The notes beneath the pieces are model-generated. The model searched no databases. It was not told the origin of the DNA and was given only the letters and a program-made list of their open reading frames with translations. Positions 54,934 through 55,052 of a DNA stretch of 64,000 nt are shown in pieces. A program made the translations under genes and the position numbers. The stretch is taken from positions 222,786 to 286,785 of IMG/VR virus record IMGVR_UViG_3300031787_000001; one strand, 5' to 3'. Within the stretch, counting starts at the first letter, position 1; each line of letters opens with the position of its first letter.

Positions 54934-54960
54934 AAAAAATCGCAACATATGTTGCGATTT
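54934..54960 (-). terminator. Intrinsic terminator ending the replication operon
   Basis: Perfect palindrome aaatcgcaacatatgttgcgattt followed by a U tract on minus. Confidence 0.75.
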
Positions 54961-54967
54961 AAAATTT

Positions 54968-55052
54968 GTGACTTGGATTTCACCCCCTGTATAACCAAAT
55001 CTTAGATGCTCAAGGTACGCCTTGACGACAGATCAATCTTTGAGGGAGTCAC
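54968..55052 (-). ncRNA. Candidate structured RNA, unassigned class
   Basis: GC-rich; possible stems GUGACU/AGUCAC, CCCU/AGGG, CUGU/ACAG and UCAAGG/CCUUGA, plus a possible UUGG/CCAA pseudoknot. Confidence 0.5.

Follow-up and report, generated by a model that had tools for sequence, protein, structure and literature searches.

A widespread family of compact, multi-pseudoknotted RNAs in uncultivated phages, represented by a module at the end of a phage ribonucleotide reductase operon

GOLLD and ROOL, both in Rfam, are orphan structured RNAs of phages or prophages that often lie beside transfer RNA (tRNA) genes and have no common downstream gene. In transfer-messenger RNA (tmRNA), the position of the second pseudoknot (PK2) is occupied by structural pseudoknots. 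Theta ribozymes, which resemble the hepatitis delta virus (HDV) ribozyme, are found at the 3' ends of tRNAs in gut phages (Kienbeck et al., 2024, PMC10879173). Here we describe a previously uncatalogued family of compact, multi-pseudoknotted RNAs by way of one member, encoded in a 64,000-nt stretch of DNA (hereafter the window, to which all coordinates refer unless a locus is named). The window spans positions 222,786 to 286,785 of IMG/VR virus record IMGVR_UViG_3300031787_000001 and forms the last 64 kb of this 286,785-bp phage record of about 29% GC. The element under study, below called the module, is an 87-nt RNA read from the minus strand (55056-54970). The gene order on that strand is a DnaB-like helicase, a class II ribonucleotide reductase (RNR), an open reading frame (ORF) with a DUF5522 domain, the module, a terminator, gp25, and a baseplate-J-like gene. 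Like GOLLD and ROOL, the family consists of orphan structured phage RNAs, often beside tRNAs and with no downstream gene in common, but GOLLD and ROOL measure 500-800 nt, the window module has less than 100 nt, and no similarity in sequence or model exists between them. A first-pass annotation of the window, made from the letters alone, had proposed an undescribed, possibly pseudoknotted noncoding RNA at this place. Its observation is partly confirmed by our analysis and its interpretation is supported, as conservation and covariation are strong among 87 distinct copies and no Rfam 15 family matches the window copy or those of 12 other loci. The novelty is the family itself, which is widespread in uncultivated phages.

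The family was recovered by comparing loci and by searching with sequence patterns and a covariance model. From 176 relatives of the reductase in viral contigs, 80 loci (designated by L numbers) were fetched for comparison. A scan of viral contigs with a 15-nt box from the 3' side of the module gave more than 118 loci; about half were chance matches and the other half contained the whole motif, in unrelated phage contexts. These yielded 52 distinct copies, 48 of which were aligned (alignment A2). A second scan with a box from the 5' side added further copies, including variants and truncated relics. The covariance model R1, built on A2, recovers 99 copies, 87 of them distinct, with scores of 51-96 bits (alignment A3). 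Modules of the family are 75-120 nt long, and their local GC content ranges from 33 to 67%. R1 matches the window at 54964-55062 with 71.1 bits (E = 1e-19). This is the sole real copy in the 287-kb genome, two further weak matches of the model being spurious.

The fold that emerges from the comparison contains two crossing helices of 7 bp each, P1 and P2, with the 3' strand of P2 located downstream of the 3' strand of P1, and a nested hairpin, P3 (Table 1). In A3, 95.0% of the cells in paired columns hold standard pairs, against 85.7% in shuffled alignments. Double-sided changes occupy 169 cells, against 42 in shuffles, and none of 500 shuffles reached 169. If the partners are slid by 1-3 columns, only 26-54% are paired, and A2 gives the same picture. 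One pair of P1 (aligned columns 9/108) occurs as GU in 30 copies, AU in 27, GC in 20, CG in five and UA in four; the CAUC box of the P1 3' strand is nearly invariant and its outer bases covary with the 5' strand. The outer pair of P2 covaries as well (GC in 71 copies, GU in nine and AU, the window's own pair, in six), and the other six pairs (CUCCCU/AGGGGG) are invariant in sequence. P3 shows covariation at five of its six pairs, with 98.9% of cells paired. P1 has a nearly invariant G.U pair and P2 an invariant U.G pair; read from the opposite strand, both would turn into A.C mismatches, which assigns the RNA to the minus strand of the window. The 5' border is placed at 55056, four bases beyond the range of the first-pass annotation, because the segment UUAGGUG pairs with CAUCUAA.

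About 30 nucleotides in junctions and helices are nearly invariant across the family. The AUAC linker does not vary even in copies obtained with the 5'-side pattern alone. In the GAAA linker the G is invariant, the next two positions are A in 86 of 87 copies (the other has a gap), and the fourth is A in 78. The last base of the P3 loop is always A, usually preceded by G. The strand UAAUAG that follows P2 is likewise nearly invariant, and the window has CAA, a mini-hairpin and GUCG at this place. Small hairpins occur at the equivalent position in L005, L106, L115 and L146, and most family members have UAAU only. The highest mutual information in the alignment links the two bases 5' of P3 to the first two of the P3 loop, with perfect covariation (AU 57, GC 19, CG 10, UA 1); in the window, this contact joins 55026-55027 with 55018-55019 (A3 columns 83-84 with 92-93). 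Within one molecule it would be sterically awkward, given an intact 6-bp P3. It may represent a strained pseudoknot, mark an alternative conformer, or join two molecules in a dimer. Assemblies of GOLLD and ROOL have been reported with intermolecular contacts, and a contact of this kind would explain the awkward mini-helix. The second base of the P1 5' strand is complementary to its P1 partner and also to the first base after GAAA.

The first-pass annotation had transcribed the minus strand without error and had sketched a fold, from which the comparative fold differs in part. Its outer stem GUGACU/AGUCAC is absent from the closest diverged copies, L005 and L044; these letters belong instead to the 5' strands of P1 and P2 and to the tail helix. 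Two of its nested stems are borne out by the comparison, UCAAGG/CCUUGA being P3 and CCCUC/GGGGG part of P2. The third, CUGU/ACAG, is not a helix, as ACAG comprises the end of the AUAC linker and the start of the P2 3' strand. The crossing pair UUGG/CCAA was rightly suspected and is part of the comparatively supported helix GAUUUGG/CCAAGUC. Two other folds were tried and rejected. A fold like the first tmRNA pseudoknot (PK1; GGG/CCC plus GGC/GCY) is compatible with most copies, but covariation gives it no support, and a model with P2, P1 and the tail helix (X) all coaxial fails because linkers of 4 nt cannot reach across the helices. Mimicry of a Shine-Dalgarno or anti-Shine-Dalgarno sequence by P2 was also discarded, as no start codon lies at the right spacing.

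One could also suppose that there is no functional RNA at all, but only a chance GC-rich patch, a site acting at the DNA level, or the coding tail of DUF5522. The nested minimum free energy fold of the element is not better than that of shuffled sequences (z = -0.95), and an ORF overlaps it, as the first-pass annotation had correctly noted: the DUF5522 stop codon TGA (55035-55033) lies within the module and the last eight codons are read from the 5' strands of P1 and P2, so that the C-terminal eight residues are dictated by the RNA. The GC-rich island reported there does exist (GC about 0.40-0.41 against 0.23-0.30 in the flanks), but it is modest, and 80-nt segments of equal GC content are present in nearby coding DNA. 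Because the nested fold is no more stable than shuffled sequence, the case for structure rests on copy-to-copy comparison and not on thermodynamics. Compensatory changes in 87 distinct copies and strand-specific G.U pairs refute this explanation, which retains next to no probability; moreover, copies exist without any ORF, and in L044 (5279-5509) an unrelated 76-aa ORF stands in place of DUF5522 and the RNA is retained.

Table 1. Parts of the module and neighbouring features in the window.
Feature	Position	Strand	Evidence or remark
P1 5' strand UUAGGUG, 5' border of module	55050-55056	-	Pairs with CAUCUAA (55002-55008)
P2 5' strand ACUCCCU	55043-55049	-	Pairs with AGGGGGU (54982-54988); no linker after P1
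Junction CAA and mini-hairpin AGA-UUGA-UCU	55030-55042	-	Lineage-specific; DUF5522 stop (55033-55035) in its loop
GUCG	55026-55029	-	C55027 and G55026 complementary to first two P3-loop bases
P3 hairpin UCAAGG-CGUA-CCUUGA	55010-55025	-	Family covariation
Conserved G, then P1 3' strand CAUCUAA	55002-55009	-	G in 77/87 copies, A in the others
Tail helix X, 5' strand GAUUUGG	54995-55001	-	Pairs with CCAAGUC (54970-54976)
UU and linker AUAC	54989-54994	-	AUAC in 87/87 distinct copies
P2 3' strand AGGGGGU	54982-54988	-	Crosses P1, giving a pseudoknot
Linker GAAA and U	54977-54981	-	Family conservation
Tail helix X, 3' strand CCAAGUC, 3' border of module	54970-54976	-	Complementarity kept across lineages
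Intrinsic terminator	54960-54937, T-run to 54928	-	10-bp stem, 4-nt loop, then T-run
Class II (monomeric, RTPR-like) RNR, 'nrdJ' in the first-pass annotation	55230-57509	-	PDB 1L1L, E = 2e-9
DUF5522 ORF, 66 aa	55033-55233	-	Pfam PF17653, E = 4.7e-19; domain ends at residue 45
gp25-like baseplate wedge protein, first gene of structural module	54447-54896	-	Pfam GPW_gp25, E = 8e-12

The module is closed in two ways. In type A, to which about 54 of 86 copies belong, the leader immediately 5' of P1 is the partner of the tail downstream of GAAA, and the two form a stem of 7-15 bp (P0). After the 3' strand of P1 comes a small hairpin (P4), whose loop is often of the GNRA type; the result is a perfect three-way junction P0/P1/P4. 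In type B, which comprises about 26 of the 86 copies and includes that of the window, the partner of the tail is the segment that immediately follows the P1 3' strand (helix X), and P1 has its full 7 bp. Type A occurs where the upstream sequence is free, either after a promoter or inside tmRNA, and type B where the module is directly preceded by a tRNA or an ORF. Both P0 and X have a different sequence in almost every lineage with complementarity kept, as in the X helices GAUUUGG/CCAAGUC of the window, GGUUUGG/CCGAACC of L044, and AAUACGC/GCGUAUU of L118.

The genomic settings of the family members are diverse. In tRNA arrays, P1 is separated by 0-1 nt from the upstream tRNA (L118, L190, L111) and the next tRNA begins 0-8 nt past the tail (L105, L118, L190, L111, L200, L122, L173), the module being spaced like one more gene of the array. 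Other copies stand directly 5' of phage tmRNA genes, after a promoter of the TAnnTTTG type; Rfam confirms the tmRNA in L092 and L102, and downstream sequence of the type seen in these two loci also follows many other copies. In L124, the module lies within a tmRNA of 468 nt predicted by ARAGORN (8426-8893), just after the tag ORF ending in ...ADLAVAA, and occupies the PK2 region in the Rfam tmRNA alignment; L174, L180, L367, L368 and L406 are alike. The copies of L125, L168 and other loci are found in 3' untranslated regions (UTRs), 2-8 nt after the stop codon of an RNR large subunit and before gp25. The reductase of L125 and L168 is of another class, with an ATP cone, and these phages are distant, but the RNR|gp25 junction is the same as in the window. 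A hairpin with a U-run, as judged by eye, follows the copies that come after ORFs in L089, L112, L329, L389, L140 and L151. In L139 (3119-6625), the RNR large-subunit gene upstream of a family member has an intein with a LAGLIDADG endonuclease domain. The module is thus portable and self-contained. Its placement at the 3' end of an nrdJ-DUF5522 operon, as given by the first-pass annotation, holds for the window copy, but the module is specific neither to this operon nor to a boundary between gene modules, as its occurrence in tRNA arrays and tmRNAs shows. A stimulator of stop-codon read-through or frameshifting was considered and dismissed, because read-through would run into another stop immediately (for example TGA-CCG-TAG in L125) and most copies have no ORF before them.

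These settings also bear on a role as a cis-regulator of the operon boundary, either as a riboswitch for adenosylcobalamin (AdoCbl) or nucleotides, or as an element that modifies the polymerase for read-through into the late baseplate genes. The module lies between an early-type operon and structural genes and ends 9 nt upstream of the terminator, and it occupies the same RNR|gp25 junction in distant phages. However, no terminator decision is to be made in tRNA arrays or inside tmRNA, no alternative pairing with the terminator stem was found, and relatives lack the module at this very junction. As to riboswitches, no Rfam aptamer matches the module, which is located 3' of genes and is followed by different features in different copies, and none of the findings favours a link to AdoCbl. 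An operon-specific switch is also disfavoured because there is no shared downstream platform, because half of the copies begin a primary transcript and are closed by a long stem, and because the PK2 slot is used. Taken together, a cis-regulatory function is very improbable.

In comparisons with known RNA classes, Rfam 15 gave no match at gathering thresholds anywhere in the window, and at E values up to 10 no family was found on the window copy or on those of 12 other loci. The sole local match at this level is a weak one to DapZ (E = 0.068), driven by the terminator hairpin. The first-pass annotation had been unable to match the element to hammerhead, twister, pistol, HDV or common riboswitch cores, and the corresponding Rfam models agree. 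Full-text literature searches for the sequence boxes and contexts retrieved no description of the motif, nor was a match found in those parts of the supplements of two large structured-RNA surveys that were accessible. No tRNA model matches the module.

Judged by context and topology, the theta ribozyme is the nearest known system. Both RNAs are phage-borne and lie directly at tRNA genes, and they share the strand order P1-P2-P3-P1'-(P4)-P2', a length of about 7 bp for P1 and P2, and a mini-helix of 2 bp in which the first bases of the P3 loop take part. The nested double-pseudoknot order of HDV-like ribozymes is present in the family, with P4 in type A copies and the tail helix in its place in the window copy. 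However, a theta ribozyme has about 55 nt and the module 75-120 nt. The theta P3 has 3 bp (RCC/GGY) and a U-CC-ACGU loop, in contrast to 6 bp and a 4-nt loop in the module, and its mini-helix pairs the loop CC with GG after P1', whereas in the module the loop bases contact two bases before P3. The catalytic C of theta opens a CUAA junction, following the HDV-like rule CNRA in J4/2; the equivalent junction of the module is the invariant AUAC. The module further differs in having an extra GAAA linker and a closing helix, and it has no G.U rule at the first pair of P1. The C preceding GAAA is replaced by U in 15 of 87 copies, with a G-to-A change of the partner in six of those. Covariance models of the HDV clan in Rfam gave no match at E up to 10 or 5. 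As for the hammerhead, which is defined by CUGANGA, GAAA and a UH site, the module has GAAA and AUA-C but lacks CUGANGA; its sole CUGA forms the loop of P3, is not followed by GA, and has a variable U that changes together with another base. Known ribozymes also occur in permuted form (PMC10085705). The Rfam models for twister, twister-sister, pistol and hatchet match neither the window nor the 12 loci, permuted versions being beyond these models. Pistol and the module are alike in a hairpin loop that forms a G/C-rich pseudoknot helix and in an A-rich linker (UUAAAUAG against UUAAUAG), but they arrange these elements in a different order, and nothing equivalent to the G-U cleavage-site context was recognised in the module; a permuted relationship to Pistol is conceivable, but nothing supports it.

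A new class of small self-cleaving ribozymes would nevertheless account for several properties of the family. Such a ribozyme would cut either at the 5' edge, like HDV-like ribozymes, or in one of the conserved junction strands, and would thereby detach the module from the upstream tRNA or mRNA and split carrier tmRNAs in two. In line with this, the fold is complex and pseudoknotted and has many invariant unpaired nucleotides (UAAUAG, the GA of the P3 loop, AUAC, GAAA), the module is small, with 75-90 nt, sporadically distributed and, as far as searched, limited to phages, and the core of type A copies has the helix order and the 7-bp P1 and P2 of theta ribozymes. In type B, P1 starts 0-1 nt after a tRNA or 2-8 nt after a stop codon. 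However, the defining features of HDV-like ribozymes (P3/L3, P1.1 after P1', the C of J4/2) are absent, as are a hammerhead core and any match to an Rfam ribozyme model. Type A copies begin at the very 5' end of a promoter-proximal transcript and are closed by the 7-15-bp stem. P1 stacks on this leader-tail stem, and a cut at the 5' edge would free only a heptamer that is still paired; neither such a cut nor a switch would achieve anything at the start of a transcript. This position and the use of the PK2 slot weaken the case for a ribozyme that cuts at its 5' edge. Cleavage in 3' UTRs would part the mRNA from its terminator hairpin, and the degenerate form in L008 keeps the helices but has lost the conserved junction bases. 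We regard a self-cleaving ribozyme as unlikely.

The second point of comparison is tmRNA itself, since in some phage tmRNAs the module stands in place of PK2. As parts of tmRNA, PK1 and PK2 are simple pseudoknots of the H type, whereas the module has three to four helices and conserved linkers and lies mostly outside tmRNA; copies of the L124 type are tmRNA domains, and the window copy is in an mRNA 3' UTR. PK1 of Aquifex aeolicus tmRNA (construct of PDB 2G1W) shares the 11-mer GGGUGGCUCCC, followed by UAA and AG at matching spacing, with the 5' half of the family consensus, and in both an A-rich strand comes after a C-rich strand that is paired to a G-rich one. The window copy (55043-55054) departs from the PK1 match at the A of GGUGACUCCC and has CAA instead of UAA. 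The match came from a text search with a 10-mer, in which chance matches are expected, and the resemblance may reflect chance, convergence on a partner, or descent.

The tmRNA setting could also indicate a nuclease-resistant or folding-insulator pseudoknot that guards RNA ends or the folding of neighbours, in a role like that of tmRNA pseudoknots or of exonuclease-resistant viral RNAs. Replacement of PK2 in some phage tmRNAs would be consistent with this function, as would the positions immediately ahead of terminators at the 3' ends of mRNAs and among closely spaced tRNAs, the crossing of the helices, and a tail that closes a loop around the 3' strand of P2. For a mere spacer or stabiliser, however, about 30 invariant nucleotides, kept in phages that range from 33 to 67% GC, would be superfluous. 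In tmRNA leaders the module would be removed together with the leader, 3' of a tRNA it would hinder rather than help exonucleolytic trimming of the 3' end, and close relatives manage without it. A purely protective role is thus distinctly doubtful, more so than self-cleavage.

We tentatively favour, with a probability of roughly 0.4, a reading in which the module is an autonomous, stable passenger RNA or RNA domain, possibly a dimer or oligomer, that would act through its shape on a conserved partner in the sphere of tRNA, tmRNA, the ribosome and RNases. As part of this reading we infer that it is neither a sensor or switch for nrdJ nor a molecule acting by antisense pairing. In the window phage, the module would be transcribed as the last part of the nrdJ-DUF5522 mRNA and, together with the terminator hairpin, would form the last ~125 nt of the transcript. 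To arrive at the DUF5522 stop codon in the mini-hairpin loop, a ribosome would have to unfold P1 and P2; because this codon lies inside the module, the latter would fold only on untranslated or already terminated RNA. Maturation would depend on the signals of the neighbours, namely RNase P at the next tRNA or tmRNA, and the terminator in this phage. The folded module might then act by its three-dimensional shape on a partner related to translation or RNases, or associate with itself. Its use in the PK2 slot of tmRNA is consistent with a module that has a structural role or binds a partner.

Several points weigh against this proposal. Only gene neighbourhood suggests the partner, and the window's own setting, the 3' UTR of an RNR, has no obvious link to translation. 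Furthermore, some 30 invariant nucleotides, a sporadic spread among phages and adjacency to tRNAs together make up a classic signature of small self-cleaving ribozymes as well. Metatranscriptome contigs from two runs contain pieces of nrdJ only (55288-55700) and none over the module; the runs were used as contigs, so that ends and strand cannot be read from them. Finally, the copies were gathered with two exact sequence patterns, and the invariance of the blocks is partly built in. However, each pattern left the other's conserved block unconstrained, and that block is still nearly invariant among the copies so collected; block conservation is therefore not merely an artefact of the search.

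Whether catalytic or self-assembling, the family might constitute a new class of natural RNA of that kind, a possibility that we consider somewhat unlikely, though less so than self-cleavage taken by itself. The catalytic form would have an HDV-like topology with a different active site, process tRNA arrays and operon ends, and yield two-piece tmRNAs. In the self-assembly form, the small RNA would dimerise or oligomerise through the covarying two-base contact. Small RNAs that are so invariant and have several crossing helices have nearly always been identified as ribozymes, as ligand sensors or as components of core machinery, and very few such new classes have been found in recent years. If the module is catalytic, it would represent a new ribozyme class and a second, independent solution for tRNA-array processing besides theta ribozymes. 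Binding of a host factor, or self-assembly, would suggest an unknown phage action on the apparatus of translation or RNA decay. With less than 90 nt, an alignment and a model at hand, the module is a compact target for biochemistry and structure work.

The distribution of the element among close relatives is patchy. Identical phages carry an identical element downstream of the reductase, and the same sequence as in the window is contained in lake and other freshwater DNA. Diverged copies occur in L005 and L044, whose reductases are 95% and 84% identical, and a short, strongly diverged version is present in L008, L009, L010 and L071. At the same junction, L007, L031 and L076 have no element, with a terminator or nothing instead. 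Truncated relics that comprise only the P1 and P2 5' strands and P3 were seen at L339:2075-2195 and in L402 (minus strand, ~1880-1974). Both run directly into the gp25 promoter region and show that the element decays in some lineages. Because close relatives have no element or only relics at this junction, the module is regarded as accessory and not as a regulator of nrdJ.

Within everything searched, the family appears to occur only in phages. Among sampled Bacteroidota genomes the pattern was found in 0 of 401 and the model in 0 of 5, one weak match being spurious; on these counts, a chromosomal ssrA-leader feature of Bacteroidota was rejected as an explanation of the copies beside tmRNAs, and the tmRNAs next to the module are taken to be phage genes. 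A scan of genome contigs with 16 specified bases returned about 120 rows, all of them chance matches. BLASTN of the window locus against GenBank phages gave no match, and BLASTN of family consensus copies against PLSDB plasmids none either. Against 50,697 GenBank phage records, the consensus copies gave one true match, LR756504.1, an uncultured phage of 636 kb whose copy was confirmed at 71.6 bits; near this copy, ARAGORN predicts a tRNA with a four-base anticodon (tcta; L411:831-906). Many carrier contigs exceed 100 kb, and they reach 430-636 kb. The family is abundant in uncultivated and often very large phages and seems to be missing from cells, plasmids and phages in culture.

Around the module, the window locus has the following further features. 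Pfam recognises in the reductase (55230-57509) only the RNR-II insertion domain, as a weak match (E = 5e-4). DUF5522 is a small Cys-rich ORF with a 4-nt overlap with the reductase stop codon. The terminator noted by the first-pass annotation was recovered by a dedicated scan (54960-54937; one found against 0.1 expected in shuffles), and a GC-containing hairpin followed by a U-run is present at 54960-54928 alone, downstream of the module. ARAGORN predicts no tRNA in the window and no tmRNA gene in the 287-kb record; the record has an array of 23 tRNAs elsewhere (G000:C1:81744-88990), outside the window, and the module is not in that array. Between the terminator and gp25, a box TCATTATATTTAT at 54897-54915 (with TATATTTAT at 54901-54909) ends 4 nt before the gp25 start codon and is kept at the same place in L005, L007, L008, L044 and L076. 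Its position suggests that it may be a late promoter; TATATTTAT by itself is not enriched in the window (seven found against 7.5 expected). A contig from lake-water DNA (run X5) joins 54890 to 54973 and skips the region of the terminator and promoter; it probably represents a related strain with a different intergenic region.

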